Assembly: GCA_977016875.1 (NCBI GenBank)
Contig: CDRNST010000293.1
Location: forward strand, 1,426,001 to 1,490,000
Source of the DNA: Pavona decussata
Taxonomy: Eukaryota
Length of the DNA stretch: 64,000 bases
Direction: 5' to 3'
The notes under the pieces were generated by a model. It saw only the letters and a list, made by a program, of their open reading frames with translations. It searched no databases and was not told the DNA's origin. Made by a program: the position numbers and the translations under genes. Positions 4,101-58,154 of this stretch are shown here, one piece after another (the first letter of the stretch is position 1; each line of letters begins with the position of its first letter).

Positions 4101-4289
4101 AATAATTGAAATACATGTTTAACTTTTCCTTGCAAACAAAATCTAAATTACGTCTCGAAAAGTCTCGGAACACTTCGATGTCTACGAATGCACATGAACG
4201 TTATGGTACTCTAGCTTACCTTTCACGGTAGATGCAAAATTCCCCAGGTATAAGAGAAACATCAATGCTGATATTTTCCAATGATCCAT
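1183..4289 (-). CDS. Copy A (5' part, continues off the left edge) of the secreted multi-lectin/Kazal/CTL/EGF/TLDc gene; exons 1-3
   Basis: Exons 4289-4220 (MDHWKISALMFLLYLGNFASTVK, signal-peptide-like, phase 1), 2669-2524 and 1428-1183 (VRVFVSLSHED...CDKVTFSK). All GT-AG, in frame, and the same lengths (70, 146, 246 nt) as in copy B. Confidence 0.88.
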
Positions 4290-16724: not shown

Positions 16725-17065
16725 TTAAGTTGTTTCGTAGAAAGTTTCTATTTCATCCGGTTGGAAGTTATGGTAACTTCCTGTGAGGAATGTTCGTGTA
16801 AAGTCGCTGCCATAGCTGTACCCACTGGGTGTTGCGTAGGTGTATCCAAGGTTTTCGTATGAATTTATTTTTGATGAGGCGTAGTCAGATACGTAAATGT
16901 CATGACCCCCGAAAGTAGGTCCATAAGAGGAGCAGCTGTATGTGGAATGAGCCCTTTGATAACTATATTGTCCTGTTTGAGTCAGTTTCACTGGCGCCCA
17001 TCCTGGCTTGTTTACCAGTGAAAACAGGAAAGCTTTCGAATCGTATCGATAACCACAACTGGAAA
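16725..17065 (-). CDS. Copy B exon 17: C-terminal half of TLDc domain
   Basis: D.KAFLFSL..., YGPTFGG.HDIYV, FL.G...F..DEIETF motifs; stop codon at 16727-16725. Confidence 0.88.
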
Positions 17066-20000
17066 CTAACAAGGAAATAAAGAAATAAAAAAATCAAACA
17101 AACTGACACATTCTTCTGATGATTACCCCATGGGATAAAGGTAAAGTCGCACTTCAAGCCTAAGTCGGCCACACAGCGGGTAGGAGATTAACCTGATCAC
17201 CTAAGTATGAAACAACTAGGAGTACTACTCCAGCCGACCTACATCCCCTCCCCCCCGAGTCGCAATGCGTCAATCACAGGACTATCCCAGACAGTCTTTT
17301 GCCGGTACTCACTTGTACACTAAGGAAGATAGTGAGACAATGCGGAGTTAAGGCTACTCTGTGACAAAACTACGCGACAATATAGAGACCAGCTTAGCCT
17401 TGATCTGACGCTTCGATCAACCGATTAAAAAATCCAACCCGCTAACCATTTCAAGTTGTCACAAAGAATCACCCAGTACCTCTAGTGAACGAAAAAGCGT
17501 GCAAACACAGACGCGTCTCATTGCTCAAAACTGGTGCTTCACTTAGGCCCGGTTCATACGTCGAACTTTACATGAGCCGAACCTAATCATTTGGTTCGGC
17601 GCATGTAAAGATCGACGTATGAATCAGTTAGGATCGACAGAATTGTATTTGGGTCGACCCGCCGTTCTATTCGACTGCGCCAGTCGAATAGAACGGCAAA
17701 AGTTCGACTTCGATTTAGACGTCGAATTTTTCATGTGCCGAACCAAATGCATACGTTACGTATAAATTATATAAATTATATCTATCCCAGAGGTCTGTGC
17801 ATTCTCTCGACTTGGCATGTGCGCAAAGGACTTCATTCTGAACAAGATGGCGGGAAAAGAGGAATGTGCTTGTTCTTCTTGTTCCAAAACAACTGAATAT
17901 ACTTCTCTGAGATGCGAAAGATAAAAAAAAAAAACGAATCTATCCTTGAAGTGCACACGCACTTTAAACTGACAGAAACTTTCCAATACAGGCTCTATCA
18001 AAGGCGACGCATCAAGACTTCTCAGAACAAGATCTTCAAAAACAACATTTGAAGAAAACATTACTCTATTCAAACAGAGATTATGCAACAGAGGTTACCT
18101 CGATAACCTTATAAATAAAACTCTTTCAGAAGTCAACCTCCGCGAAAGAATGTCGGCACTACAAAACAAACTAAAAACCTGCAAAAACATTTTGAGCTTT
18201 GTTATGGAATATCGCCCTTCTGTACCTAACCTAAAACAATTCAGATGAGTAAATACAGGAGCCATAATCAGGGATGGAGACCGTAAGTGTGGGGTCCACG
18301 CGTCCCCATGAGTTGTACCATAAAAATCTATTCAGTTTAGAAAAAATTGCTCCCCCCCCCCCCCCCTCACGTCATAAACCCGCGTGAATACACGAAAATT
18401 TGCGTGCGGCTTCTACCTTATATGTGACACGCAAAGCAGCTGACAAAAAATTCACTAAAGATAAAAAATTCCTTACCTGTCTGAGTACATGTCCGTAGAG
18501 TGTAAGCTTTTTTATTCATCCAACAGTAGCAACGTACGCAGCGCCACCGTTTTGGCGCCTTTTTGACTTTACGGTAAGAGTCATGTATCAATAGGCCGCT
18601 TATTCCAACTTTTCCCATCTTCTTTCAATTGTTACCTTTTCCTTGTGAGAGTCTAATTCCTTAAATGTTGGCACTGAGGAGATATTCCCTGGCAGAATTT
18701 TAAAATTTGGACGCCATTTTGAACGGGTAGAAAAAAATTTCAATTTCTCCACGCGCGATCCTGGCCGTTTACGCGCGTGCGCGCACGCGCGTATGGCGCA
18801 ATTTTTTTCTGAAAATAGATTTTTTGGTACAACACATGGGGACAAGCCCACAAATCAAAATGGCATCTCGTTACGGTCTCCATCCCTGATTATCTCTCCT
18901 GGTAAATGACACTGCACTTGATAGAAAATCAGCCTCTGCTAAGGGAGATCTACAAAGACCCTTCCTAGTTCCTTACTTTCGTACAGAAAAGGGAGATCTT
19001 TGAAAGACGTACTAGTAAGAGCAAATTAGCTTTGAAGGTCATATTCTTCCTATCTCGACCAGTAGGAGCCGTGTTTGGCCTATCTTTATTATTTTACCAA
19101 ACAAGTGAATTCTAAATCATCTTTCCCGCCATTTTGAATCTTGTTGAGTAAAAACAGCAGCCGCTGACCACGAAAATCTACTTTCTCACCTTAGCTTTAA
19201 TTAAGTTCGACTTCAGTTAGGTTCGACGTCTGAATCAACTGCCGAACTTAATTATTTGGGTCGACCTTAATAGGTATTAGGTTCGGCTCATGTAAAGTTC
19301 GACGTATGAACCGGGCCTTAGGGATTGATTCAAGGCTAACAACAAGGTAGTCACTAATCTTTGGAGCACTGACATATTTTTTCGGGTTTGCATTCCTTGC
19401 CCAAGAATAATTATAAAAACCCGTAGCGCGTTTGCGCAAGTGAACCCTTTGAAAACTGGAAACATTGGTGGAGGGGGAAGGGAGAGTTAACATTGCAACC
19501 ATCTAAAGACCTCTGTTCAAGATTGTATGTACCCCTTTGGTTAAATGAATTTAACAGTTTAATGAGAAAATCGTCAAGTTTAGTTCAGTATTGCTAGGGA
19601 ACTGAAAAGACTGACACATCTTAAGGTTTCGTTGCATAAGAACACTATGGGCCCGTTTCTTAGTACTTTTTAGTACTTTTTTTTTAATTTAACACATATT
19701 CATCGGATTTACGAGAAAAAGTAGTAGTGATGGTTGTTCTAATATGAGAAGCAAGCAATGAAATACAAAAGGTTTTTTTTTAATTCACTCGATCAGCGCG
19801 GTTAAGTTAATGCTCAGAAGTTTCACTGTATAATTCTGACACATGAAATATTTAAACCAAGATTGCGCCATAAAAAAAAATCAATTTTTAAAACTAGTAA
19901 GTTGTCTAGAGCAGGATCCACAGTTATGCTACACAAATGAAAAGCATAAAAATTACAAGAAGATGAGGGGATATTGAAAGCAATAAACAGTTTTCTTTAG

Positions 20001-23000
20001 TTGAACAACGACAGTAAACGATCTGGCCTATAAAAAATACAAACAACTGATTTTGTTAAATGAAACCAGTGTGCGATGAAATCAGGCAGTGCATCTGATA
20101 TAAACTTAAATATCTATACATGTGTGTCATGTGCTTATTCTTCATATTGGCTGTTTTCGAATTTAGGACCGTTCAGTTAAGATTGGAACAGAAAGTCTTA
20201 GTATCCGAATTAAGGGACCGACTATTTAAAGGAAGTTAAAACCGAGGTTGAGATGGTCGTAGTCTGAATACCACCGCTTTGCCCAAGATCGATTCCGATT
20301 ATTTAGACGAGGTTTAGTCGTGGATTTAGATGAAGCTTACCCGTGGTTTTCGGAGTAATCTTCAAAGCCTGATTTTGGCTTAAGCAAGGTCTAACTTAAC
20401 TTCTGTTCAAACGCGGATGTTACATCCGATTTAAATTCTCTCTGATTTATGATTTGTTTTCTTTCTGCTTTACGACGCAACCCGGTAATTAGCTCTGAGC
20501 TGAGCTATTCCACTCCAATAATGGAGTTAACAGTTTAGGTTTAAAATGATGTTTTGAGGAATTACTGTATTTTAACATTGGTGATTGACAGACTCTTGAT
20601 AAGAAATTCAAATTGTGACTCCATTTTCCAATTATATGATTCAAGGAAAGTTTGTGCTTTTTACCGAGCAAAGCTAACTCCAATACGGAGTTAAAAACAT
20701 CTTTTTTGGAGTTATAATCACTCCAAATATGGTAGGGCCACAACCATGAGTTAAATCAAAGAGTTATTCTAAACGCTTGAAAATTACTGCAAGGTAAATA
20801 AAGTCACTTACTCCATGAGACACTGGCGTATCCTCCAAATATATACTGGCCGACCTTTATTATCGTCACGGTAGGACCCTTGTTATCGCACCCGGAGTGA
20901 AAGGTAGATGCAGCCCAACCATCAACGGACGCACGCCAACACCGCTTCCAGTAAGAAGATTTACTCTGAAGGACAGGTTTGAGCCAGTTGCTTAAAGTGC
21001 CAAGGTAATTATCGTTGTTTTGCAGAATGGATGAATGTCCTAAGCCTTCAATTGAAAAATTATAAAATGTCATCATGAGAGGCAAAACATAAACGATATA
21101 CATATTTTTAAAATATATAGCGTACACGAGAAAGACTGGCTGATTCGATTTCCAAAATCTTCGAAGGCAGTTAAGAAAAATTCCGCGCAATAACTTCTCC
21201 AACCATTAATAATTTTAAGAGGAATTCAAAGCAAAAGTTCATTGAATTTATGATATTTTTTAAAGATCATATTTCATATTTCCAAACCTCCTTCCTTTTG
21301 AGGACAACAATTTAACATTTTGTCGTTTATTTGTTTTTATACAACTTTCAACCTGCATTTAAATCTTGCTATTAATCACGTAGGATGGCTGAATAGCTAA
21401 GAGCCTTAAATAGATACCCACTTTGATACGGGAAGTGGGGGAAGGGGAAAATGTTTTAGTGGACTGGACTATTCGTTGAGTACTGCGCGGGCTATTTGCT
21501 AACAAAACTAGGTCAAATATCTTTTATATCATATAAGTTTCAGCTTATTTAAAAAGATCCTTTAAACGGCCACACTTTTAGAATACTTACCAGCATAACT
21601 ATAATAGCAATCAAAGCCATTTCCCACATATCCACTGTTACACTTGCAGGAATAGGATCCACGTTTGTTTGTACAGGTGGCCAGCTGATGACAGTAAGAT
21701 GTCTCTTTGGTGCATTCATTAAGATCTGAAAAATAATTTAAAATATTAAAAATAAAGTAGTAGAATTTAAGATATCTATTACTGTTACTTATTTATTCCA
21801 AAACAGCAGTAATAGCAGTTGTGTATTTAAACTTCTGGTTTCTCAAAAGTGGAAACATGCACGACTGATGGTCTTAAACAGGAAGGCACAACCAGAACTA
21901 CCTCATTAAATAAAAAGTAGATTTTCTTCTTACAATATTTTTCCATAGACGTACTCGTTAGAAAAACACTGTTTCGCAGGGACTCACACAATTTTTAAGC
22001 CAACTATCGTTTGAATGTGCTCGTAACTAGACAACTGTCATGTCTGTATTAGTTCAATGTATATGTATATCATAGTTTTAGTACATTGTTGTGCTCAGGG
22101 CTCCCATTGATAACAGACAGCTTTTTGCATCTGAAGGGGCTACCCTGAGCGTTATAAATCAATAAAGGTTCTTCTTCTTCTTCTTCATCTTCGGTTCCTC
22201 ACTCTATTTAATCAAAAGGTGAAGCATACTGTTGTAAATAATAAAGGCCCCCGTGTAACTTGAAACTGTCGACAAAATGTTCCCTTCTCTTGTGTCACGC
22301 TTTGAATCTCATTATATTTTGTTTGGTCACTGGTGTCTATCAATCATTCTTCACCAGTTTCAGTTGTAATCAGCCTACCTTTCTTACAAGTATACTGATG
22401 GCAGTCACTGCACTTGACGTCATTCCATTTGTAGTTGTGCTCCACGCCAAGTGCGTGCACGCAGTCTTCTTCTCTAAAATTATTTGGTTGATTCTTAGCC
22501 CAAGCTGTGAAGTCTCCAGCTCCAAGATCCGCCCAAATGAAGCTACCCTCTGTGGAGATGTCATTTAATCCCAGCCAGGATTTTTCGCCATTATGACGAT
22601 GCTGCAAAAACACGTTCTCTTCATTGTTGTTAATGTCGACAAGGACTGATTTTTCTTGACGGCATTTGTTCATCGCTGTGGTCCAGTTTGTGCATGTTTC
22701 ACTTGTATAGTAACAAAAGCCATTGAAATAGCTCCAGCCAGGATCACAGACATCTGTAAATATATCAGAAGAGATTATGAAATCCAGAACTGTAATAACC
22801 AAAGAATAAAACTGCTAACAGGGGCACCCAACGGATCGCTTCGCTAATTTATCTGTTCGGAAGGCCCTTAATCCCTAGTCTCCCTCGCAGCCGTTTTTTG
22901 GGCTGTCACGCAACGCTCCCCTTGTTTTAGGGGGAGCGTTGCGTGACAGCCCAAAAAAACGGCTGCGAGGGAGACTACTTAATCCCCGGCAATTTTCTAA

Positions 23001-26000
23001 AGAGAATTTTCACCTCGAACGTTCGTGATATCGGAAATTTAAGGCCTAGTGTTTTCAGGTACCGAAGGTCACCGAAGGAAGGTCAGCTAAGATTTTCGAA
23101 AAGGAAATAAGACCAAAGGTTTTCGAAAAATGGACATAAATGCCCTAGTAATTTTGAAAACACTCAAGTTCCCAAAGAATGACCGAACAGATAAAAAATA
23201 TTATAGCGCGGCCTAAAATGAACCTACAGAGCTTAAAGGCACTCCAGATAGCCTAGAATTGCGTTGCAAAGGATTTGAGAGAAAACTGTCGTTGGGTGCC
23301 CCTGTGACAATGGATAATAATCATTAGTAGCCAAAAACAGGCCGTCGATTGTCCTTAATAAAGCTAATGACATATCAATATATTCATGAATACAATTCAG
23401 TGACGCAACTTTCGTTCTTCATCGAATGGCTCTAAAATGGAATTAATTAAAAACCGAGGTTCTATTCTGTTCCTCTTGTTTGCTTCTGTTGAGTATTTCA
23501 CACATTTTACTTCTCATCGTGCTGCGCATAATACAGTATTATCTTTTCTAGGTTACTATGCATTATTAAGTTGAATATACCAGACAACAAGGCGTATTTA
23601 CTGACCTGTAAGCACCGCGTAACTTACTGACAGCGGATCATATCTGGTCTGGTACAATTCCTTGACACAGACTCTGAATCCAGAGGAATTCATGTTCTGT
23701 AGAAGTAAAATTTAATTGATGCTTACTTGCTTCTTTAGTTGGCGTTAAGATTTTTTTCCGAACAATAAATCTATTCCCAAAAGATTTCCAATAATTTATC
23801 TCATGATTAAACGACTAACGTCGCTGAAAAATGAATTGCAAAATTTTTATTGCCGTAATTTTTAATAAAGGACGATCCGTGGAACCTAAATTTTTTTCAC
23901 CATTCTCAAATTCTTAGGTTTTGTCTCTGACATGGCTTTGTTAAGCGAGCAAGAGAACAAAGATAAAAGAGCTTTTTTTTTAATAAAGAAAAGAAAAAAA
24001 AACGTCAACAAGTATTTAAGTATATTATATATATTTTCCTAAGTTTTCCTTTGATTCGTTATGCCGGACACAGTTTCTTAAAAGGTAATTTCCCATTGGT
24101 ATAGAGTGTGTGCACGACGGAGATGTTGGAGGACCGAAACAATACAATGATTTTCCTTTGCGAAATATATTCTATTTTTATGCAAATATCTTCTATTGTT
24201 TTAGCCCTCCAACATGGCCGCCGAGCACACACTCTATAGTTACAGTTTCGAAATACTTTATATAAAAGTTGCTTCTATAAAAAAGCCTTACCTCGATCCA
24301 AGCTGTGATCCCGTTGTGCACTGAAGCTGAGTTTCCACTTGCCGTCGTGCTGTGATTAGCGGATATTAAAATCGTTGGCGTTGAGTTATAAGCTCTTGTA
24401 AATGAAACAAACTGCAAAAGAAAATAAATGTTAATACAACAGGTTTTATTGTTTTGTGTTGTATTTATTTACTTTTAATTAATTAATTTGTTTATTTATT
24501 TGTACATATATGTGTCAAGTCAATCATCTTTCTCTCTTATTTTCATTCTCATCACATTTCTTACAGAAAAAAATCATTTCTTTTAGAAATATATGCTGAT
24601 TTCGTTTTTTTTTTTTTTTGAACATCCTGTTTAAGTGGTTCTTCTCGTTTTTTGTTTAAGGCCATTGACTCTTGATTAATACAGAGTTTATGGCTACATA
24701 GGAAAAGAATATCTTATTAAACCAGGCTCCGTGACACAGTTTTCTTGATATACCATGGCACGCTAAGCTTCCACTGCATCTCACGTGGTGGCGGCAAGCG
24801 TGAACATCACGTCACAACAGTAAATCACGGCTAGACATGAAAAAGGGCTGCATGTAGGAACCTATGATGAATGCATGTACTTTGCCATAGGAAACACAAA
24901 TCCAAGTACTTATAGATATCATACTGGACTCCATTCGTATATATCGTACCGCGACACTCGATTTTGCAGCGTGTCTTACACAGGGCTCCATATATTTGCA
25001 TGATTTGGCAATGTATTGTAAGCCTGCATATTCCGCAAAAGAGTTCCATGTAATCTACCCTTCTCCATTGAGAAATTAGCCACGTAAATTCGTTTTAATT
25101 TTTAAGGCCCTTGCTTTCTGGATCCAGTCAAGTTTTCCCTACCTCACAGTAAGCGTTGTTGTTTTCGTCTGCTGGTGGGTTTGTGTTTGGAAAACCGATC
25201 GTTCCGTGCTCGTTAAATAGCGGTTTGTGGAGTTTGGCGAACGCGAACCAGTTCTGTCAAAAGAAATAACAGTCTTAAATGGAACCACTGAATACCAACC
25301 AATAAATGTAAGAAGCCACTGACAATTCTGTGAGACGTGTTGTTGAAAGTGAATGTATTATGTCGTCAGTGACACAAGCATACTCAGAAGCCAAGGTATT
25401 AAGAGAAGGTCTTGCCCGGAAAAGCGTTTTATCACCTAAGTATGCTTTTCTCCTTCGGCTAGACAACGCGGTACAAAAAGCCACTTTTTGAAAACCAAAC
25501 AGTGCAGCCCTTCGGCCTTAATCTCGAACTCATGATCACTCCTTACACAAAGTACTCAGAAACGCATAAGCAAACAGCTGAATATCATAACTTTTTTGAA
25601 GAGGAAAGAACCTAATGATATATTTGTCAAAGCTTCTTGTTTTATTAAAAATTTTGATACAATCGCACCTCTATTAAGCGGCCACCCTGGGGACTTTGAA
25701 AACTGGCCGCTTAATAGAGGTTGGCCGTTGAATAGAGGCATCGAATACAGCACTTTACTGACAAAATAATAATTCGGGACTTTAGAAAGTGGCCGCTTAA
25801 TGGAGGGTGGCCGCTTAATAGGTGGCCGCTTAATAGAGGTCTGACTGTAGTGCGCTGTAGCACTCGTGCAACTTTTACCTTGCATAAAAAATTGCTCAAA
25901 ACGACAATAACTTCAACCAATCAGGGGATTGAACATTAATGGTAGTAGCTTTGTACAAAACACCTATAGCTAAGAGCATACCACGTTAATGTCCTCATGT

Positions 26001-29000
26001 TTTCCATCAAAATTCTGCATTTCTCTAAGGCATGCCTTAAAAGAGCTCTTTGTAGTATCTTCGAGCCAAATGAGAGCGGCATCATACTCATTTCCTGTCC
26101 TTAAATGTTCTGACGTTATAAGAACCACAGGCGCTTCAGCAAACTTGTCCTAGAAAATTACAAGAAAAGAGGTAGTCGGAAATAGCGAAAATCAGTTGGT
26201 TAACAAGTATATTTAAATGTTTTTACTGTTTCCTGAGATTCCTGGCAGAATGAACATCCAACGTATATATCCATATTATATATTTCGATTCCAAACTACT
26301 TGTTTAGTTGTTTTACACAGAACAAAACTATGACAGGATTGACACTTAGATAATTGCTGATTGTATATCAGAGTTACCTAGAGTGCAGGTTTGGATTTTT
26401 ATTAAATGTTGTTTTCTTACGTCCTACCTTGGGAAAAGTTACATCTGCACAGTTTGTCCCAGACCACCACTTTTGCAGCTGAATCTTTCCAGTCAAGCCC
26501 TCTGGTGGGGCTCCTTGGTACGCGATCCATTCGACAGTTGCAAATGGGTTGAAATTCTCCTTTTTTCTCCCAGTTTGCATAACGCAAACAGTGAAATTTT
26601 TTGGACTGATATTTTCACTCCACGATGTCACTGCGTCGTGGACTGTTACGGAATCGTTAAGTTTCATGTGATTAACGGTGACTTGAACGTAAACCTGTTT
26701 GTCCGGATAGAAGCGGTATGGAGGAAAAGCCACTGTTTTGCAGCTGGAATCGGTCCATTCTGGAACATGGAGGAGTTCTACTCGGCCTCGAACAATTGGA
26801 AAACCTGGTAAACAATTTAACGTGTATAACATTAATTAGTCAAACTGATAACTCACTCTTTGGTTGGTATCTGATCTGCAGCACCTTTTGCAATGTGATC
26901 TAGTTGCTACACTGACAGTTGTGTTGATTAAAATCGCGTTTTTGTTTTAACTTATAGTTTGGTTTTAACCTCTCACCAGTTTGGTAGGTCCCACGTACCC
27001 GATTAACTTGTGGTCTGGCACACGAGACCCTGTTTTTTGGTTATTACGCTTCTGTTTTTGTTGTTAGCTGTCCTTTGAATATTCTGCAGATAGCCGAGTG
27101 AGTTCTTTGCAGAGTACAAGTTTCTCATTTCACAAAAGGAGAATGCACAACTGTATAACATGGTCTTCTGTGGAGCTTTCATGCAAGGTATTATTATAGA
27201 GCATCTCTCTTACCTTCACAACTTCCTGGATGGTACACAAGGTTATTTTCCAGTCCTCTACAGTAACTTAACTCATGCCAGCATTTGTTGTCGTATGTTG
27301 TTCCATTCGCAGTGCACACTGGATCCTGATAGGAGGGACATTGTTCAAAACACTCACAGCGAGCGTCATGCGCACTGTACGTCTTGCACACTCCAAACCG
27401 TGGACAATGCACATTAAGACAGGGATCGAGATCTGTGACAAAAAAAACAACAATTAAAAAATAACTAAATATTTTCTTTAATGTCATACTTGCGTGTAAA
27501 ATGAGAGATTTCTTGAATAGCTTGCTTATTGGCAGTGTAAGTAAAGATAAATAACTTTGGTAAAATTGCAATAAATGAATATAAATAAATTAATTAATTA
27601 AGAAGTTAATTAAAACACAAAACATATCTAAATATAATAAATGAAAAACCAACCCCCAATCACAGCATAGCAGACTGTTAAAGGGTCGTGACCACTTCCT
27701 GATCCCTGTAAGTCTTTTACGCAAATCTTCATACCCTTAAGGCCAACCTCCTGCAAAAAATAATAACAATTTGATAACACTTACTCCCATTTTCATGTTT
27801 AGGTAAAAAGCCAGATCTTTATAATTAATAACTTTAAAAATAATTTGAATTTTTTCCAACGTCCAAATCCAAATCCTACAGAAGGAATGTTTAACGTGTC
27901 TAGCTAGTTCAGCCGTTCATCCCCGTGTGGAACAAGGTACGTTCTGATTCTTATTCTTGGGTCCACTTCCAAAGAAGGATTGTTTAACCTGTCTAGTTCC
28001 CACTAGAGGATTCTTTTACTTGTTTAGTTCATCCGTTCAATAACATTTGCAACAAAGTGGGTTCTGATTCTTTTCTTAGGGTCCCTTCCCACATCAGGAT
28101 TCTTTGACTTGTCTAGTTCATCCGTTCAATCCCATTTGGAACAAAGTGCGTTCTGATACCCTTCTTCCCACAGGAGGGTTGTTTCACTTCTTTAGTTCAG
28201 TCGTTCAACCCCATTTGAAACGAAGTGCGTTCAGTTTCTTTTGTAATGGTCCCTTCCGACAAGGGGATTCTTTTACTTGTCTATTTTAGTAGGTCATCCC
28301 TATCTGGAACAAAGTGCTTTTGTTTCTTTTCTCATGGTCCATTCCCACAGGAGGATTCTTTTAAATTTCCACTTCAGTAGTCCAACCCTATTTGGAACAA
28401 AGTGCGTCCTGATTCTTTTCTCAGTGTCCCCTCCCATAGGAGGATTCTTTTACTTGTCTAGTTTAGCCTTTCAACCCCATTTGGAACAAAGTGCGTTGTG
28501 ATTCTTCTCTCAGGGTCCCTTCCCATAGGTGGATACCTTCAATTGTCTAGTTCAGCACTTCAACCCCATTTAGAAAAAAGTGCGCTCTGTTGCTTTTCTC
28601 AGGGTCCCTTCCCACAGGAGGCTGCTTTTACTTGTCTATTTCAGTAGTTCCACCCAATTTGGAAAAAAGTTCCCTTCTGATTCTTCTCTCGGGGTCCCTT
28701 CCGATACGAGGCTTGATTCACTTGTCTAGTTCGGCAGTTCCACATCATTTGAAACAAAGTGCGTTCTGTTTCTTTTCTCAGGGCCCCATCCCTCAGGAGA
28801 ATTGTTTTACTTGTCTACTTCATCCTTTTAACACCATTTCGAACAAAGTGCGTTGGGATTCTTTTCATGGGGTCCTTTCGAACAGGAGGATTGTTTAGCT
28901 TGTCTAGTTCAGCACTTCTACCCCATTTGGAACAAAGTGCGTTCTGTTTCTTATTACAGGATCCTTTCCAACAGGAGGATTGTTTCACTTGTCTAGTTCA

Positions 29001-32000
29001 GCACTTAAACACAATTTGGAGCAGAGAGCGTTGTGATTCTTTTCTCAGGGTCCCTTCCCACAGGAGGATTTTTTTGCTTCTCTATTTCTGCAGTTCTACA
29101 CCATTTGAAACAAAGTGCATTCTGATTCTTATCCCTGGGTCCCTTCCCACAGGAAGATTGTTTCACTTGTCTAGTTCAAAGAGCGTTTTGATTCTTTTCT
29201 GAGGGTCCCTTCCCACATGAGGATATTTTTACTTCTCTCTTTCATCAGTTCCACACCATTTGAAACAAAGAGCGTTCTGGTTCTTTTCTCAGGGTCGCTT
29301 CCCACAAGAGGATTCTTTCACTTGTCTTGTTCAGTCGTTCAAACCCATTTTGAAAAAAAGGTGCGTTCTGATTCTATTCTCAGGGTCCCTTCCCACTAGA
29401 GGATTGTTGCACTTGTCTATTTCAGTAGTTTAAACCCATTTTCAACAAAGTGCTTTCAGATTGATTTCTTTGGGTTCCTTCCCACTGGAGGATTGTTTAA
29501 CTTGTCTCATTCAGAAGGAGTTAAACCCAGTTTGAAAAAAGTGCGTTCTGTTTCTTTTCTCAGGGTGCCTTTCCACAGGAGGATTGTGTCACTTGTCTAG
29601 TACAGCCGTTCAAAGCCATTTGGAACAAATTGCGTCCTTTTTCTTTCCACAGGGTCCCTTCTCACAGGGCAAAATCCCGTCTTATAGAGCGAAAATAAGA
29701 CAGCTGATAATATCATACCTCCACCCAGGCCGTGATGATGTTGTTTTCTGGGGGAACGAAGCTTTTCGCTTGACGGTCATATTGGTGATGAACGGACACA
29801 AGGACAACTGGTGACGCATAGAACGTGATGTTAAAAGGCACTTCCTGAAAACGATAGATAAATGAATAAACAAACAACTAATTAGATTTATAAATCAATG
29901 CGGAAGTTTTAATTAATCTTATCTAATGGTGAAGTAGCTCAAACAGTCATTAGCAAAGAAAGTTTTTTCAGGAACTTTTTTTAGTAACTATATGCTTGTT
30001 ATATTTAGTTATTTATTTATTTATTTAATTATTTATTTATTTATCTTATTATCTATATTTGTTTCATTAGAGTTGATTTCACTATTTAAGTGCTGTAAGT
30101 ATTCAGAGTGCTCTGCAAAGGAATATTTTGAGATAATGTATTTTGTTTATTCTCAATTTTTGCCTGCTGGGTAATGTATTGATATTATTAAAAGAACAGA
30201 AATACTAATCGCAACTGATAATATCACTTTGAGTGACATATATTAATGATATTATAATAAAAAGGTTAGCTCTGATTTGCTTAAAAATAAAGCGAGGTGA
30301 CTGACAGTTGTCACTTACCTGACAGAATCCATAGTTGTCGTTAGCTGAGGGTTTGCCTTTGTTGGGAAAAACCGCTTCTTCAGTGATCGTAAAATTGAGA
30401 TTGGAACCATTGCCGAGGAAAGCAAACCAGTCCTATAAAAAAGAAAAATTTCCATTATTATAACTAGTCTTTCCACCTAAGGTAAATTAAAATTAGTGTA
30501 CGTTTACATGTTACTGCCAAGTACAGGATGGTAGTTCGAGAAGCGACTTACCACAATTGTATCCTTGTGTTTTCCGTCAAAAGGCAAGAATTCTCGTATA
30601 CAGACCTCAAATCCCCGACTTTCTAGATTTTCCAACCAGACATAGACGGCATCATTAGGTTTAGTACTTCGAGAGTATTTAGCGGTGACAAACACAGTAG
30701 GCCTTCCACCAAAGCTCTGCAAAACAATTTTTTGCATCAGTCAAATGATAATTTAATTTATACGTGTAGTCAATGCCCATTATTTGAAAGAATATCAATT
30801 GTTTCTGAAAGGTAACGTTTCATTGAATACAAAGGTGGACGGGAGGGAGGCAGAAATTTCCATGGGGGTGTGTCCTCCCTGACCCTCAACCCCTGACATA
30901 ATCTTCGACCAATGTATCCAATCTTTTTATACTCGTGGTTAGGACTACGTGGACTCTGAAATCCATTCTTGTTTTCAGGGATGGAAATCTTCGTCCGTTT
31001 TCCGTATCAGTCATCAACTCTCATTCCCGCGCTTTTGTTAAAACTTGTATGGGTGCCCTTTGTAAGCTCTTGACGACCCACAGACCCACTTTGCAACAAA
31101 CAGCCATCGGTGTGTGGGAGAATTCTGAACATAATGAAACAGAGACAGCTATAGACATCTTGGCTTTTTTGTGCTGCTCCGATTATTCGTTATGACAATT
31201 TTCTTCTTGAGTGTAGGAACTGAGCCAAAATTGAATCCCTCAGTTAACGAACAAACATGAGTCAGAGGAACATTCTTTTACTAATTGGTATTGTCTTGCC
31301 GAGTATTGTGAATTTGGCACTGAATCTGGAAGATCTCATCCGAGATAGCATTGTCGTGGGGGTGGGAGACAAAAAACTCTGTGTACATTTGCAACTGGAT
31401 TCCTTCCTCACTTCGGAAAAGGCAATTGCAAAGTCCAGGCAGTCTGAAATAGTGAAAAAGAAACAAACTTTCCCACAGCTAAAGGAAAATTTCCAGGATG
31501 ATTTGGCCCTTCACATGCAGAGACTCCGTCTAGCTACAGAATCTAAATACATGAAGAGCTCCAAAGTGGGTCACAGGGCAAAAGCTTGCAGATATCAGCA
31601 AGAGAGGGGGTGAGATGAACTTCTTTGACATAGAGCATAATAACGAATTCTTCCTGGGTGAACTTACTGAACTAGCTGCTGTTCAACGAGGTGCAGGAGA
31701 TTCATGACAAGCAAAGGTCACATTGAATGGGTAACCAGCCGAATTTAAAGTGGATTCAATTGCAGATGTAACCGTAATTCCGCCAAGTCTGCACTACAAT
31801 CTAAAACCAACCCCATTGCTAAGCAAGACAACCAGAAACTGAACTGAACTTTCACAGCAGAGTGACATGTGCAAAACGTTTGCTCAAGAACAAGTGAATT
31901 TTGATAAAAAAAATTTAGAGAGAACTTTATTAGGAAGAGACCCAGCTTAACGTCTGAAGCTAACTCGACAGCTTCAGCAGTGATGACTACAAGGCTAATG

Positions 32001-35000
32001 TAGCAAACAAACAATCTAAGCTGTTCAGTTAACTCTGGGCGTCATGAAGAAAAGCTCCATTCTCACACTCAAAGAGGATGCGAAACCGTTCCAAGTCACT
32101 GTTCCAAAGACAGAACCCGACAGCTCTATCAGACAAATTAAAAGAAGAGTTGGATAGAATGTAAGAGACGGGCGTCATATCCATAGTAGACCAACTTATT
32201 GATTGGTATGAGCCCATGGAGGTAACTCCCAAGAGTAGCGGAAAAGTTAGGGTCTGTGTAGACCTGAGCAAGATTAATGAGTAAATTTAGAGCTCGTGAG
32301 AACCACCCACTTTCAGCGGTAGACAAAACACGAGGACCATTGCCAGGTTCCAGAGTCTTCAAAAAACTCAGATTCAGAATTCTGGCAGAATAAGCTAGCC
32401 TGGGAATCACAAGACCATTGACAACGTTTTGCACTACATACGAACGTTTCTGCTTCAATGTCTTACCATTTGGCATCCGTTCTTGTTCAGAGAAATTCCA
32501 AAAAAAAGTGAGTCAGATCCAGGAAGGAACAGCAGGCGTGAAATATTACATAGATGATGTCTTGCTCCACGGGAAAAACCAGGAGTCACAGAAGAGTGAA
32601 TAGAAGAGAGAGAAGAGTGGCCTCAGAAGAGTAGAGAAATCGGACAAGAAGTCAGAACAGTAAAGAACCTGCTCACAAAAGAAAATAATCCCGCAAAAGG
32701 ATTGCTTTGGCCATAGTTCTCGGAAAAAAATAAAAAAAAATAAAAAAATCAAAGGGGGAGTGATAGGTTGTAGTCAAATGTAAAAAAAAAACAAAATCAA
32801 TCAAAACAAGATTAAAATTTGGCTATGAAAACCCCTACACCCCCCCCCCCCCCCCCCGCGCGCGCGCCCTTTATACTTTAAAAGACTTGTCACGTACTAC
32901 TCCAATGAAGGATGCCAAGACCAAAGTGCATCTACTTTCCTTAAAAAACCGCCTTTGACCGAGTAAACTATCATCAGACACACACCGCAATACTTGGATA
33001 AATGAAACACAATTGCAGGAAATAAAGCTTTGGTCACCAAAAGTTGTGTTACAACAATTAAAAAATTGAAAACCCCCACAAAAAATGCTGTATTTTGATT
33101 TAATAACCGTATGATTTTCAGGTCACGCAATTAAAATTGAGAACTTGAGTTAATCCTAAAAACACTGAGAAGCTTTGAGAAACAACAATATCATGACAGA
33201 TGTCTTAATGAACGCAAAGCAGATCATTAAAGCATAAAATTCGAGTTAGAGGTCAATCCTTGATAATCGTTTTAAAAAAAACACTTTTTTTAATTCTAAA
33301 ACGCAAATAAGGTTTATTTCTGGATAAAATCTCTAATGGCTATTTCAATTCTTGATAAAAAGAATAACATTTAGCTTGGGTTAAGTGCGACAATTAAATT
33401 CGTTCTATAGGTCCGTAATCTTTTCTCAATAGAGATTAACTGTTTTCGTTATTAATAATTAAATTTAGGTGATGTTGAAACTAGTCAAGGTAAAGCATTA
33501 TATAAATAAAATAACCTTGAGTACTATTGGTGATTGACACTACGCTGTTGAAGTTCATTCTGACCCTTGCGTATGAACGGCGCACACTGGTTCTAGCTTT
33601 TGAGTCTATGGATCAGACGAAGTTCTCCATAGTTTTTTATGAATGGCCTAAGGGTGGTTCTACCTTTTGACTTTGGGCTGGATGGAAATGCTTAGTACGT
33701 CTCTTTATCACTGTTTCCCTGCGGTTCTGATTACTAAGCTGCATAACAATCTCACTTTCAATATCTGAATGAAATATTTATTTTTTGGAACTCATTGAAA
33801 TTATTGTGTTGTATTTTTTCTCGGTGCTGCTTTTCTCAATCATTGAGATCAAGTCCCAGTTTTTGAGAGTCTGCAGAAGGATTTCACCATTCAAGCGATA
33901 TCTATTGCCATCAAAAATTGGTTTTGTAAGATTCGATAACTGTTTTTTCTTGGTTGTTCGCAGATATAAAAGTAAAACGGCAAGGAAATTCAAATTGGCA
34001 AGACTTGACACGAAACGGAACACCTTTTTACTTGATCTAACTGGGCAGGGCAGGCGGACCTGTTGGTTTTAAGCGTCAAACGGGCAACGTGAAAATTGAA
34101 CAGTTAATATATCGTTAGCTCTAACGTCACTTCTATTCTCTAACCTGAGAAAAGGTGACTTTATCACACTTAGTTTCTGTTGTCCATATTCCACTGAAAG
34201 TTACACTGCCATGTGATATTCCTGGTTTGTCTTGAAAGGCCACCCAGTTTATTGTTCCTGTGCCATTTGTGGAGTCCGTTGCACGCTGACATAGCAGAAA
34301 TCCTGAAGTATTTATCTCGGTTTCCCAATAGGCTGACGGTGAATGAACAATAGAGGAATCCTCATGACTTAGTGACACAAAAACTCGAACCTAAAAGGTT
34401 AAAGATAGAAGAGTACGAAAACATTGAGCAGCATCTTATGGATAAATATATTATAAGTTTGTTTGGATTGCACAAATTCAGGAACAATGCCAATCATGTG
34501 GAGGTTAAACATTAATTCCTCCCTCTTTCCAAAATCTCCAGTCTCAATAACAGCAACAATTCCTAAGACTTAAGAAATATAACTATAATAAAGCATGAAT
34601 GATTGGAGAACAATAGCCTTTCCGTTTGACATTCTCAAAGAGCTCAGTTAAGTAAATTCGTATCCCTGGATTGAGAGAGGAATATTATAGGACCCAGTAG
34701 ATATATTCGATATGTCATCATTACCCATAGTCACCTGTCATTCCTTACTGCAATTTTGTATATATTTACTTCTTTATTTATTTTATATCATTTTAACGGG
34801 GGTGGGGGCTGCTTTGTTTTCCCCTTATCCAATCACTATCCCTCCCACGATCTATTTCGAACAGTTTGTTTTTGCCGTTTTTTTCTGTCATTAACTTCCC
34901 CAAGGATGTGATAAACAGCACGTTCCCCCGGAATCACCATGAAACACATTATCATTCTTAGATTTATAAACTTACCGTCCCCGATCCACTGAACGCCTGA

Positions 35001-36729
35001 GGGAATACCACATTTGTGCAACGTGGCAATGTACAGTGATCAGGTACATCACAGCCGCTGTTGCAATTCCATCCCTGTGGTATGTCAGTTGAATTTATTC
35101 TTCCTCTCTGCATGGTAACACCTAAGGATTCAAAAGATAATCCGGTTTGTATATATTGTGTTTAAGGAGAGAATAGAGGGAAGGGGGTGGGGTGTTGTTA
35201 GTGGGAGTAAAGGTGCATTACACGGAAAAGAAATAAAAAATAATAATTTAATGAAATAAATTGTGCATCACTGAGAGCACCACGTACAGAAGTAAAATAA
35301 GTAAGCACCCTATAAGGAAGAATTAACCAAAATCAGGACCAAAATCGATTTCTTCTCATGTTACAGAACATGAACGTAATCAGGCACCATATTGGTATGC
35401 AATCTGACAAAGTACTAATGTAACAATGAACCCGAAATAGGACAAAACCCTTCTGCATGTAAGGGCTTGCTCAGCCCAGCAGGAAATACCATTCATTGTT
35501 TAAGATCCACAGGTCGTAAAATTCCTTAGTTTTATAAGGCTGCCCAAACAAGTCACGAACTTTGAGATTTAATCGTCAAAACTTTCCATTCTCAATCTGA
35601 CGATCTTGAGAATCTTTATAAGCAATGTTTACATTTTCAAAGTAGTTGATGAATGGCACAATTTTCTAACCCACACTATTTACGAAAATGAACCCAAAAT
35701 AGATCAAAGACTTGAGAAAAGACTTCCTTAGTTGACCATAAAATTCTGCAACCGCTTAGAAAAATTGCATGATATATTCTCACCAAAATAATTTAATTTC
35801 CGCTGTTGAAATTCATCGTTGAACCCATTTAGTGGAACGACTATTAAATTCCAAAGGGGGTGTGTAACAGTAAATATAACAGTAAATATTCGCTATTCAT
35901 TCTGTGGTCAGGACAGAGAGAACATTGTCTTCCGAAAGAATGCTTTTGTGCTGAAATTATGCTTCAAGAAGGTTACCTGAAATGAAGGTTTTCTCGACCT
36001 CTAAACAACTCTGTTTTTAACGTGTCATCGTTGTCAACTTCAAAAGCGATCAAGAGTTGTTGTGCTGCCAAGTACTGCAAAAACATGCCTGTCTACGCAA
36101 CTTCGATTTTAGTTGTTTTACTTGAACTTAGAGGTTACACGAAACAAATAAAGCCGGGAGTTCGGTATCAATGTTGTTTGATCATACAATGGCTGGAAAT
36201 CTCCAAAGGCATGGCAGGCTGTTAAACCCGGAAATGTTCGGTACCCTTTTATAAATGAAACGAAACGTTTTTGTCTCACAAGTACCACTAGAAGAACACG
36301 TAATGGTATTCAAATAACTAAATTTCATTTTGTTTCACGTTTTTTGTTTCGTTTTCGCAGCAATGTAAGAACATTTGGTATCTTCCTGTAGGGGGTGTTC
36401 CCTTAATTTCCATTAACTTAGTACAATTTGTAATATGTCCTCAAATTATCAACCAAAAACAGAAACTGAAGTCACAAAAGAATAATTGAAATCCATGTTT
36501 AGCTGTTCCCTAAAAGGAAACTTACGAAATCTGAATTACGTTTTGAAAGGTTTTACAACACTTCCAACACCTCGATGTCTTTAATAAAAGCAGAATGCAC
36601 ACGAATAGATATTCCTAACCAATTCATTAAATGAGCTAAGTTATTGTACTGTAGCTTACCTTTCACCGTAGAAGCGAAATTTCCCAGGTATAAGAGAAAC
36701 ACCAATGATGATAGTTTCCAATGATCCAT
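16725..36729 (-). CDS. Copy B, complete 17-exon gene: secreted protein SP-(H-lectin-like)x3-follistatin/Kazal-(H-lectin-like)x3-CTL-cbEGF-TLDc, 1044 aa
   Basis: Exons: 36729-36660, 35121-34976, 34390-34145, 30716-30552, 30432-30319, 29844-29719, 27750-27654, 27432-27214, 26804-26428, 26149-25982, 25253-25143, 24411-24292, 23696-23606, 22753-22379, 21725-21591, 21045-20812, 17065-16725. All introns are GT-AG with compatible phases; total 3135 nt ending in TAA; exons conserved in copies A and C. Confidence 0.9.
17890..19095 (+). mobile_element. Penelope-like retroelement fragment, split by an insertion
   Basis: Decayed frame THFKLTETFQY..IKGDASRLLRT..FKQRLCNRGY..FVMEYRP..HLIENQP.L.EIY..YRKGRSLKDVLVRA, typical of the Penelope post-RT region. 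Confidence 0.7.
18256..18901. mobile_element. Non-autonomous TIR element inserted in the Penelope fragment
   Basis: About 30-bp TIRs CAGGAG..ATAATCAGGGATGGAGACCGTAA; 7-bp flanking duplication gtaaata/gtaaatg. Confidence 0.75.
20812..21045 (-). CDS. Copy B exon 16: N-terminal half of TLDc domain
   Basis: SSIL...L..WL...W..CWRASVDGWAASTFHSGCDNKGPTVTIIK....IFGGY, the canonical TLDc N-terminal signature. Confidence 0.9.
21591..21725 (-). CDS. Copy B exon 15: calcium-binding EGF domain
   Basis: DLNECTKETSYCHQLATCTNKRGSYSCKCNSGYVGNGFDC; phase 1-1 exon; not in the ORF track. Confidence 0.9.
21990..22190 (+). mobile_element. Probable 3' end of a CR1/L2-type LINE
   Basis: Stem-loop CTCAGGG...CCCTGAG, then AATAAA and a (CTT)n tail; boundaries approximate. 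Confidence 0.4.
22379..22753 (-). CDS. Copy B exon 14: C-type lectin domain
   Basis: C..GWSYFNGFCY...C....WLGLND...F.W...W..NQPNN...EDCV.....WNDVKC.....YTCK. Confidence 0.93.
22819..23304. mobile_element. TIR element (CAGGGGCACCCAACG ends) in intron 13 of copy B
   Basis: 15-bp perfect inverted termini; absent from the same intron in copy C. Confidence 0.7.
22876..22977. mobile_element. 102-bp near-perfect hairpin MITE with 9-bp TSD (Academ-like TAG...CTA ends)
   Basis: TAGTCTCCCTCGCAGCCG...CGGCTGCGAGGGAGACTA flanked by cttaatccc on both sides. Confidence 0.88.
23606..26804 (-). CDS. Copy B exons 9-13: second triplet of H-type-lectin-like repeats
   Basis: Three ~95-aa repeats with pattern G......C..V.F...F...P.V.V.....W.E......F..C.......V.W.A. 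Confidence 0.75.
24102..24236. mobile_element. TA-flanked MITE (TAGAGTGTGTGC...GCACACACTCTA); same family at ~38432-38568
   Basis: Inverted termini; empty site GGTATAGTT in copy C (~57925). Confidence 0.8.
25660..25847. mobile_element. Tc1/mariner-type MITE
   Basis: CA.TC..ACCTCTATTAAGCGGCCACC inverted termini, TA duplication; clean empty site TTTGATAGTGCG in copy C (~59845). Confidence 0.85.
27214..27432 (-). CDS. Copy B exon 8: follistatin-N plus Kazal domain
   Basis: DPC.NV.C.....C......ARCEC...CP....PVC..NG.TY.N.C......C.......HPGSC; phase 1-1. Confidence 0.92.
27654..35121 (-). CDS. Copy B exons 2-7: first triplet of H-type-lectin-like repeats
   Basis: Same repeat pattern as exons 9-13, with matching intron positions. 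Confidence 0.75.
27870..29672. repeat. ~89-bp tandem satellite (~20 diverged units) filling intron 6 of copy B
   Basis: GGGTCCCTTCCCACAGGAGGATTGTTTCACTTGTCTAGTTCAG...CCCCATTTGGAACAAAGTGCGTTCTGATTCTTTTCTCA recurs at 28513, 28602, 28692, 28781 and onward. Confidence 0.95.
31030..32620 (+). mobile_element. Degenerate Ty3/Gypsy gag-pol fragment in intron 3 of copy B
   Basis: Gag-like RDSIVVGV.DKKL...LQLD..LT.EKAI; RT motifs GKVRVCVDL, F.FNVLPFGI..CSEKFQK, YIDDVLLHG; many stops and frameshifts; no LTR recognised. Confidence 0.85.
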
Positions 36730-38199: not shown

Positions 38200-39600
38200 A
38201 TATTAAAATCGTTGGCGTTGAGTTGTAAGCTCTCGTAAATAAAAGAAACTACAATAGAAAAGAAATGTTAATACAACAGATTTCCAACGATCCATCTTGA
38301 CGAAAATATTGGGAAATCAACAGGTGCGATGCAGGACTTGGACCTAGGATCTGTTTTATAACCCCTGTTTGCAACCCCACGTGATTTCTCATACGCTAGG
38401 AAGAGTATATCAATTACTCGGAAGACAAAGCTATAGAGTGTGTGCACGGCGGCCATGTTGGAGGACTAAAACAATAGAAGATATTTGCATAAAAATAGAA
38501 TATATTTCCCAAAGGAAAATCATCGTATTGTTTCGGTCCTCCAACATGGCCGTCGTGCACACACTCTATTGGTGCACATAAAATAAGTACACAAGAAAAT
38601 CAAGTACACCTGGCTTGTGACGTTTTGAGACCGCGCATGTTTGAACACATCAGCTTTTGTTTATAGAAACGATAAAATATGGCTATATGGTCTTGTTAAA
38701 AAAATCAATCTTAATATAGAATCAAGGTCGTTTTACTACTTTAAAGCCGCGAAATACGTTTTTCCGACACTATTTTGAAGAGCGCAAGACCTTTTGGACT
38801 ACATCTACTTATAAAAATAGCGCTAAACCAGAAGGCCATTTTCCAAGTGTTGCTTCTTTCGAACTCTTTTCCTCCCTCTGTTGACCTTGTTCTCCATTAA
38901 AAGTAATAAGTTCTTCCCCGTGACTCGGATTAAATTATTTCTGATGATAGCACTTTACAGTACAAAAATAAGCAGTCTCTTTGGGACGGTCCTATTAGCC
39001 CACAAATATTATTTCTGGATCCTAAATGTCAAACGAGTGTTAAGAATAAATAATATCCAAGCGGAAATATTTTCGCTTTCGTTAGTTCCTTTTTTTTTTT
39101 CTTTTTAAGTACTCTCCATTTCTTGAAATCCGCATACTGTCTCACTTTCAAGAACATTTCCCCTGTAAAATTTGTTTATTAAAGTCACGAAAACACAAAT
39201 AAATTGATCCAAGAAACTGTCATTTCCATTTTGCTTTAGCAAAACATGTCAGTTTCTGAGCACAAAAATAACGAGATATGTGCAACTTTGTTTGGGTTCA
39301 GTAAGAGAGAGGAAAGAAAGGCGACCATGACAACAGTAACCTTATTGTAAGTGACAGTGGATGACCGAACAATTTGGTTATTTTGATAAGGACGCCACCG
39401 AGCTCTGCACGTGCTCAACCGTTGTGCTAGAAAAGAACGTTGTTTCTGCAATAAATATTGTTTGTTCATTTTGTATCAACCATAAGTGCCAGAGATTAAT
39501 TGTCACACGAGCGTTGTGATGCTGAAAATAACTTCTTGACACCGTAATGCAAAATACAGATCACAAAGCTACGTTTTGATCGACCGTTTTACAACTGTTT
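38200..39600 (-). pseudogene. Collapsed relic of a further gene copy: promoter and first 5 codons fused to an intron 11/exon 12 fragment
   Basis: ATG GAT CGT TGG AAA at 38295-38281 with TATA/E-box upstream; 38200-38279 matches 24364-24441; 38590-39600 re-duplicates upstream sequence. Confidence 0.78.

Positions 39601-58113: not shown

Positions 58114-58154
<41 letters not shown>

Follow-up and report, generated by a model that had tools for sequence, protein, structure and literature searches.

A tandemly amplified family of secreted-type multi-lectin proteins with a variable TLDc end in the coral Pavona decussata

The window analysed here is a stretch of 64,000 nucleotides from the coral Pavona decussata (assembly GCA_977016875.1, 602 Mb), taken from positions 1,426,001 to 1,490,000 of contig CDRNST010000293.1, called C293 below. 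It holds a complete gene on the minus strand, copy A, which consists of 17 coding exons running from 36,729 to 16,725 of the window and lies between parts of the previous and the next gene of an array (copies C and B). The predicted domains of its product are, in order, a signal peptide, three H-type lectin (H-lectin) repeats, a Kazal module, three further H-lectin repeats, a C-type lectin domain (CTLD), a calcium-binding EGF domain and a TLDc domain. Copy A belongs to a large family whose lectin modules are near-identical between paralogues and whose variable part is the C-terminal half of the TLDc domain. Here we describe the gene, its modules and its paralogues, and weigh what such a protein may do.

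Gene model of copy A

Exons were built from stop-to-stop open frames, and frame-keeping GT/AG sites were then sought for each neighbouring pair. All 16 junctions are canonical GT-AG, in phase and give a sensible peptide; the donor of exon 7 at 27654 is a weaker site, picked by homology. Exon 16 has two usable acceptors. That at 21039 gives a joined model of 3,129 nt, or 1,042 aa plus stop, and that at 21045, six bases upstream, gives 1,044 aa; the latter is favoured because orthologues have "AG-LGYS..." at this point. The 1,044-aa model of the first-pass annotation, an earlier reading of the window, is thereby retained. The joined protein was used locally for length, hydropathy and counts, searches were run on single exons, and questions on the protein as a whole were addressed with database orthologues, chiefly P0222 (Pocillopora meandrina, 1,023 aa, partial). 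The exons and the evidence for each are as follows.

Exon 1, 36660..36729 (-): start codon and signal-peptide-like leader with a phase-1 intron at its end (donor aagGTAAGC; like leaders in P0306 and P0296)
Exon 2, 34976..35121 (-): first part of H-lectin-like repeat 1 (matched by P0222 residues 7-59)
Exon 3, 34145..34390 (-): end of repeat 1 and start of repeat 2 (P0222 mapping)
Exon 4, 30552..30716 (-): core of H-lectin repeat 2 (orthologous repeat against Pfam H_lectin, 1.5e-5)
Exon 5, 30319..30432 (-): end of repeat 2 and linker toward repeat 3 (junctions, P0222 mapping)
Exon 6, 29719..29844 (-): first half of H-lectin repeat 3 (sub-threshold H_lectin match of the orthologous repeat, E 1.2e-3)
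Exon 7, 27654..27750 (-): second half of repeat 3 (P0222 275-309 maps to 27759-27655)
Exon 8, 27214..27432 (-): follistatin/Kazal module, phase 1-1 (Pfam Kazal_2, 2.5e-5)
Exon 9, 26428..26804 (-): whole H-lectin-fold repeat 4 and start of repeat 5 (fold comparison of an AlphaFold2 (AF2) model)
Exon 10, 25982..26149 (-): core of H-lectin repeat 5 (orthologous repeat, H_lectin 2.7e-6)
Exon 11, 25143..25253 (-): end of repeat 5 and linker (junctions, P0222 mapping)
Exon 12, 24292..24411 (-): first half of H-lectin repeat 6 (weak H_lectin match, E 0.019; orthologue P0300, 1.8e-6)
Exon 13, 23606..23696 (-): second half of repeat 6 (junctions, P0222 mapping)
Exon 14, 22379..22753 (-): C-type lectin with QPN...WND motif, phase 1-1 (Pfam Lectin_C, 6e-17)
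Exon 15, 21591..21725 (-): calcium-binding EGF with D-L-N-E-C start, phase 1-1 (EGF_3 6.5e-11, EGF_CA 3.1e-10)
Exon 16, 20812..21045 (-): linker and N-terminal half of TLDc, acceptor 21045 (alternative 21039; Pfam TLD, 2e-11)
Exon 17, 16725..17065 (-): C-terminal half of TLDc and stop codon, the variable part of the family (phmmer, alignment)

The Kazal, CTLD, EGF and TLDc modules have phase-1 introns at their borders, the pattern expected from exon shuffling. P0222 is collinear with exons 2-17 at 55-80% identity, and the ends of its high-scoring segment pairs are the exon ends. An unbroken open reading frame (ORF) of 1,104 aa (P0254) lies on a 4,220-nt contig of complementary DNA (cDNA)-like structure in Logan run SRR22097818, and 574 aa on a 1,892-nt contig (P0321) span H-lectin through TLDc. 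Since lectin and TLDc share one frame in these cDNA-like contigs of other corals, the model is not mis-joined. The earlier claim of a single gene that includes the TLDc exons agrees with both the transcript-like contigs and the annotated orthologues, which unite the two parts; TLDc exons forming a gene of their own, named at that time as the finding that would overturn the claim, are not what the one-frame contigs of relatives contain. Judged from its sequence, copy A is an intact, real gene, typical of its family.

Lectin modules, TLDc domain and export features

The H-lectin repeats form two triplets, each of types a-b-c, on either side of the Kazal module. Searched with Pfam H_lectin (PF09458), the window exons gave one weak match, in the open frame of exon 12 (E 0.019). 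Repeats 2 and 5 of P0222 and repeat 6 of P0300 reach the cut-off (25.5, 27.9 and 28.4 bits), and orthologue repeat 3 is sub-threshold at 19.4 bits (E 1.2e-3). No H_lectin match was found in 21 exon 9 paralogues searched against Pfam. A profile of the same 21 paralogues retrieved from the PDB sequences neuroserpin only (E 1.2), which was rejected as a chance match.

Repeat 4 is assigned by fold comparison, because neither Pfam nor the PDB gave a sequence match. Its AF2 model has six strands at a predicted local distance difference test (pLDDT) value of only 74; the top Foldseek matches are the Helix aspersa agglutinin (HAA), SLL-2 and the Helix pomatia agglutinin (HPA), with probability 1.0 and E about 3e-3. 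VIA Z values range from 7.5 to 9.4, with 9.4 for the H-lectin domain of discoidin I and 8.4 for HPA over 87/99 residues. The repeat thus has the same six-stranded beta-sandwich as the agglutinins of Helix pomatia and H. aspersa, octocoral SLL-2 and the C-terminal domain of discoidin I/II. Those lectins are homotrimers of single domains, whereas here six divergent repeats lie in one chain, and sequence identity between the two groups is 12-18%. Repeat 1 is homologous to repeat 4 (30% identity between the exon 3 and exon 9 domains). Six H-lectin-like repeats had been proposed; repeats 2, 5 and 6 are supported by Pfam in orthologues, repeat 4 by its fold and repeat 1 by its homology to repeat 4, while repeat 3 stays below threshold. 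A three-chain complex prediction of P0222 repeats 1, 2 and 3, aimed at the possibility of a pseudo-trimer within one chain, scored 0.31 against a mark of 0.34, which tips the balance in neither direction.

The remaining extracellular-type modules match Pfam above cut-off, in line with their first assignment as follistatin/Kazal, C-type lectin and calcium-binding EGF. Exon 8 scores 24.7 bits with Kazal (PF07648, cut-off 22.8), and the module reaches 32.7 bits in P0197. Exon 14 scores 62.8 bits with the C-type lectin family (PF00059). Its QPN and WND sit at the usual EPN/QPD and WND positions, which form the calcium/sugar-binding motif of C-type lectins, and are kept in 10 paralogues. Exon 15, which starts D-L-N-E-C, scores 40.6 bits with calcium-binding EGF (PF07645).

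The C-terminal TLDc assignment likewise holds, through the Pfam match of exon 16, the alignment of both halves and the fold of an orthologue. Exon 16 alone matches Pfam TLD (PF07534) at 44.5 bits (cut-off 24.5, 2e-11) over profile positions 10-76, and full-length orthologues score 58.8-95 bits. Exon 17 alone has no Pfam match; by phmmer it retrieved 1,283 relatives, mostly exon-sized ORF calls, and the long relatives that were scanned carry Pfam TLD at the C-terminus. Full-length relatives were found only by a region search from a long TLDc protein. Exons 16 and 17 together align end to end with 22 complete TLDc domains. The TLDc domain of an Oculina orthologue (P0199:274-463) is 63-73% identical to the window exons, and its model (pLDDT 96.5) has TLDc structures as its first 16 Foldseek matches (Skywalker, NCOA7, OXR2, mEAK7, Oxr1; template modelling (TM) scores 0.55-0.83).

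Reviews of TLDc proteins and Finelli 2016 treat the domain as cytosolic. OXR1, NCOA7, TBC1D24/Skywalker and mEAK7 have Pfam TLD and the fold in common with the coral domain (TM 0.70-0.83 to 6r82, 7obp and 4acj), but they are cytosolic binders of the V1 part of the V-ATPase, whereas the coral TLDc lies behind a predicted signal peptide and extracellular-type modules. It also differs from the OXR1/NCOA7 type in its extra covarying cysteines and in being the most variable part of its protein. In an alignment of 29 TLDc domains, Cys36 is present in 20/20 of the ectodomain type and 1/9 of the BTB/cytosolic type, 8/9 of which have Leu, Ile or Val at this position. Cys81 and Cys122 are present or absent jointly, and a third covarying set occurs in Acropora and Porites TLDc types. 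Such a pattern would be expected of disulfides in an oxidising compartment. The signal-like leader, the extracellular-type partner domains and the extra paired cysteines would set copy A apart from the OXR1/NCOA7 functional class, and its product is not expected to be a V-ATPase regulator, because V1 is on the cytosolic side of the membrane.

The N-terminus of copy A reads MDHWKLSSLVFLLYLGNFASTVKG and ends at the phase-1 intron. The leader has a hydrophobic core, and by eye and hydropathy its V-K-G end fits the -3/-1 rule; signal-like N-termini are found in 9 orthologues. No transmembrane segment was found in copy A, where no 19-residue window reaches a Kyte-Doolittle value of 1.6, and the C-terminus is hydrophilic. 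The protein has 44 Cys and 14 N-x-S/T sequons. The earlier description of a secreted-type protein that lacks a transmembrane segment is consistent with the leader, the hydropathy scan and the like leaders of orthologues, and the product is predicted to be exported and soluble.

Copies, paralogues and sequence variation

The other members of the array in the window, and one relic, are listed after copy A.

Copy A, 16,725-36,729 (-): complete, exons 1-17
Copy B, 47121..61748 (-): exons 7-17 of the next array gene, found by blastn with copy A exons; the 5' exons are beyond the window end
EGF exon of copy B, 55540..55541 (-): 7-nt deletion; tblastn splits the exon into two frames, and DNA was aligned with five other copies
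Copy C, 1183..4289 (-): exons 1-3 of the previous array gene, intact and with conserved splice sites; the remainder is before the window start
Relic, 38200..38428 (-): a 49-nt piece of exon 12 at 92% identity, together with about 150 nt like the region upstream of and overlapping exon 1

In copy B, exons 7-14, 16 and 17 are without stops and the N-terminal half of TLD matches at 8.6e-12. Because its 7-nt deletion is a frameshift, copy B is probably a pseudogene, unless the symmetrical EGF exon is skipped or the assembly is in error. Searches by tblastn with orthologues found no protein-level similarity in the relic or the intergenic DNA and no further exon relics in 4.4-16.6 kb and 36.8-47 kb, and six larger ORFs (intergenic, intronic and satellite) had no Pfam match. 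The three or more head-to-tail copies first proposed are thus borne out by copies A, B and C; the relic amounts to small fragments, and the family is far larger.

In the whole genome, the 153-aa frame of exon 9 has at least 150 matches, and of 247 candidates for PF07534 at least 150 exons score above the Pfam cut-off. In at least 27 loci an exon 9 copy (75-100% identity) is followed on its own strand, after 4.6-12.7 kb, by a TLD exon. They are distributed over six contigs.

C293: 10 loci, head to tail, 1.10-1.49 Mb, period 33-55 kb
C25: 10 loci, two blocks in opposite orientation
C20: 3 loci
C81: 2 loci
C330: 1 locus
C31: 1 locus

Exons 15 and 16 of copies L024-L040 fall into two sequence types: type 1 (L025, L038) has 95-97% identity to copy A, and type 2 has 75-88% and a 3-nt indel. 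The lectin exons of the same copies are uniformly 93-99% identical. Because two types at exons 15/16 occur with uniform lectin exons, the copies are mosaics, which suggests exchange or gene conversion. The view of the array as one that evolves by birth and death is supported by the frameshift of copy B, a degenerate short copy on C25 and the two sequence types.

The C25 copy L037 (C25:3949938-3959937) has an exon 1-like leader some 0.8 kb upstream of exon 9, and its exon 10 is interrupted by a stop and a frameshift; if the leader were joined to exon 9, the protein would lack the first lectin triplet and the Kazal module. Large arrays of more distant exon 9-like copies are found on C123 and C88 (about 30, 47-50% identity) and on C86 (9, 71-73%), where the matches contain stops within the matched stretch. 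None of the best 150 TLD matches listed comes from these three contigs. Many of the TLD exon matches lie in arrays on C12, C112, C46, C26, C62 and C230, in architectures unlike that of copy A.

Variation was analysed in 10 kb from each of 18 further paralogues together with copies A and B. Between A and B the introns are about 84% identical, the lectin, Kazal and CTLD exons 92-99% and exon 17 87%. Nonsynonymous divergence (dN) and its ratio to synonymous divergence (dN/dS) among paralogues are as follows.

Exons 7-14 (lectin, Kazal, CTLD): dN 0.012-0.035, dN/dS 0.08-0.41
Exon 16 (TLDc N-terminal half): dN 0.07, dN/dS 0.22
Exon 17 (TLDc C-terminal half): dN 0.119, dN/dS 0.45

The dN of the TLDc C-half is 4-10 times that of the lectin exons, and the lectin scaffold is near-identical between paralogues through purifying selection. 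Exon 17 has up to 8 residue types per site and in-frame indels of 3, 6 or 9 nt, and stops occur in 0/13 copies. At 87.3% nucleotide identity it is as diverged as the non-coding DNA on its two sides (87.2% and 84.1%). In a sliding window along the exon, dN/dS peaks at 1.4 in codons 31-50 and exceeds 1 in that one window. The variable patches fall in a loop-rich stretch of TLDc, about residues 106-178; conservation is seen in the core strands and in the terminal E-x-E-V-F-Y strand. Such variability is compatible with diversifying selection on surface loops.

Two intronic features of copy A were also recorded. An 89-bp tandem repeat of about 13 to 19 units with 72-79% matches lies in intron 6 of copy A (27997-29668) and in the same intron of copy B (61900-63940), and is a conserved intronic satellite. 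Intron 3 contains at 31200-33100 (e.g. 32418-32603 +) a degenerate reverse-transcriptase-like fragment with a weak Pfam RVT_1 match (E 0.018), and the neighbouring ORFs have no Pfam match.

Relatives and interpretation

The same architecture, annotated as uncharacterized, occurs in Pocillopora, Stylophora, Oculina, Porites, Acropora, Montipora and Actinia proteins of about 1,000-1,190 aa. Since it is found in stony corals and in Actinia tenebrosa (P0319), it predates the split of corals and anemones. Entries P0222, P0295 (Stylophora "Aggrecan core protein"), P0296 (Oculina LOC144664642), P0300 (Porites lobata), P0242 (Acropora digitifera LOC107345791) and P0319 (LOC116304478) are, as a group, alike in domain order and length, collinear exon for exon and marked by signal-like N-termini. 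These automatic predictions are 55-85% identical to copy A and do not differ from it in kind, and the nearest relatives (Porites, Pocillopora, Stylophora, Oculina) are only about 60-85% identical. The architecture, first put forward as that of a candidate undescribed system, is already present in public annotations, but the literature searched yielded no characterised protein of this kind and no paper on a lectin-TLDc protein that is extracellular or from a cnidarian. No annotation searched records how large the tandem array is, or the pattern of constant scaffold and variable TLDc. The Tara coral genome paper reports that tandem duplication is pervasive and treats lectin orthogroups, H-type among them, and leaves TLD unmentioned.

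The same N-terminal scaffold also occurs with other ends. In P0313 it is 67% identical and ends in CTLD-EGF-Fibrinogen_C (1e-78), and further sister families carry COLFI, SRCR or EGF arrays. In the Pavona genome, tandem arrays on C243, C155 and C52 have exon 9-like exons at 42-45% identity, each with a single-exon fibrinogen-related domain (FReD) 8-12 kb downstream (e.g. C243:503274 with 490913); a genome-wide search with PF00147 gave 556 first-look candidates. TLDc in turn ends other anthozoan ectodomain proteins, namely signal-anchor/collagen/Ig/Sushi/TLDc proteins ("hemicentin-like" P0154 and P0166), TSP1-TLDc (Nematostella P0191) and EGF-array-TLDc. Their C-terminal TLDc is about 50% identical and has the same Cys36-Cys53 signature, but their N-terminal scaffolds differ and several are apparently type II membrane proteins rather than soluble.

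P0154, P0166, P0179 and P0190 appear to form a type II family of the order signal anchor-collagen-Ig-Sushi-TLDc in corals, Actinia and Nematostella. At a Pocillopora meandrina locus (L001), the collagen-Ig and TLD parts are annotated as separate neighbour genes. Beside a lectin-TLDc locus on a 3.28-Mb ENA contig from a related assembly (L002, ctg14965), positions 14734-16750 hold a QRICH1/DUF3504 ORF and a weak phage-integrase ORF, which together look like a Crypton-like mobile element.

The best explanation of these features is that the family encodes secreted mosaic glycoproteins, soluble recognition or agglutinin molecules with a diversified TLDc head, to which we give a probability of about 0.6. 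Copy A would be a member of a large, tandemly amplified hexacorallian family of cysteine-rich mosaic glycoproteins whose product is exported. A constant, multivalent lectin scaffold would bind common glycans; the H-lectin triplet may mimic the snail agglutinin trimer, and the CTLD would retain the QPN/WND calcium-sugar site. The TLDc domain would be the diversified C-terminal binding head, and the array would provide a repertoire of soluble proteins that recognise or agglutinate microbes or symbionts. TLDc is read as a diversified extracellular head because the scaffold is invariant, the C-half diverges while staying open, the cysteines covary and sister families end in FReD. The family may have an immune or symbiosis function.

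Ficolins, tachylectin-5 and the mollusc fibrinogen-related proteins (FREPs) are secreted recognition proteins with a C-terminal fibrinogen-related head. They likewise combine a constant N-terminal part with a C-terminal globular head in expanded multigene families, and their head, the FReD, is borne by the same coral lectin scaffold in sister families. Unlike ficolins and FREPs, the coral family has a TLDc head and no collagen stalk, and genome sequence, the material examined here, gave no evidence of somatic diversification.

Several points weigh against this reading. To our knowledge, no TLDc domain has a known role in ligand binding. The signal peptide of copy A was judged by eye and hydropathy alone, and two of the six H-lectin repeats, 1 and 4 (type a), have no Pfam H_lectin match in orthologues. 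The set of copies compared varies from exon to exon, within 10 kb per paralogue; the dN/dS peak of 1.4 is a descriptive value over 20 codons. With an overall dN/dS below 1, the variability of the TLDc C-half is explained as well by relaxed constraint on loops, and gene conversion across the lectin exons could inflate the contrast between scaffold and TLDc.

The first-pass annotation interpreted the locus as an extracellular platform for glycan recognition with a TLDc module, evolving by birth and death like an innate-immune or symbiosis locus. One secreted-type gene in a tandem array agrees with this; the copy number has to be raised, and the architecture is one already annotated. Since the lectin modules are constant and the TLDc C-half is variable, TLDc as the diversified head fits better than lectins in the role of diversifying recognition element.

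In a different division of labour, the lectins would recognise the target and TLDc would perform a conserved extracellular or lumenal task, for example protection from reactive oxygen species in the symbiosome or phagosome. TLDc proteins are linked to oxidative-stress resistance (PMC4742741; review PMC13570293), the core residues FGGY and the C-terminal Glu of E-x-E-V are conserved, and the fold is near OXR2 and NCOA7. No catalytic activity is established for TLDc, however, an effector with a single task should be constant where TLDc is the most variable part, and a FReD binding head occupies the same position in sister families, so that we regard a lectin-targeted effector as unlikely. It is equally improbable that the protein is a structural or adhesive component of extracellular matrix, mucus, cnidocyst or skeletal matrix, with copy number reflecting dosage instead of repertoire. 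The scaffold is indeed under strong purifying selection, and names assigned automatically ("Aggrecan core protein", "Uromodulin", "Fibrillin" and the like) reflect its matrix-type modules (CTLD, EGF), but amplification for dosage does not predict a C-terminal domain that varies in patches with in-frame indels, and the terms TLD, lectin and Kazal are absent from the Acropora millepora skeletal proteome paper. A gene-model artefact, with the TLDc exons as a separate downstream gene or most copies dead, is very improbable and already largely refuted: the 3.7-kb intron between both TLDc exons, the frameshift of copy B and split public annotations (e.g. a Pocillopora collagen-Ig gene beside a 196-aa TLD gene) would suit it, but unbroken cDNA-like ORFs span lectin and TLDc, RefSeq and Tara annotations give the same full-length architecture in several genera, the GT-AG junctions are phase-compatible throughout and exons are intact in nearly all sampled copies.

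Returning to the diversified-head interpretation, the gene itself is a further member of an existing, undescribed family, and it is the whole family that stands out as unusual. On sequence evidence, what looks novel is an extracellular-type TLDc that forms the variable end of a multi-lectin protein fixed in its other parts. It is tentatively possible, though doubtful, that hexacorallian TLDc as a class was recruited outside the cell as a germline-diversified recognition head, interchangeable with FReD by exon shuffling on an unchanging lectin scaffold and also carried on collagen/Ig/Sushi and EGF stalks. If that were true, TLDc would add a new class to the known extracellular binding domains and would form a major part of coral recognition of non-self and symbionts. 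TLDc biology has so far been built on cytosolic proteins of V-ATPase and oxidative-stress function, and the family would show a second, extracellular life of the fold. It would also be a clean example of C-terminal head exchange on a fixed scaffold bounded by phase-1 introns, and a candidate coral repertoire for the recognition of microbes or symbionts beside the FReD, C-type lectin, TIR and NACHT expansions.

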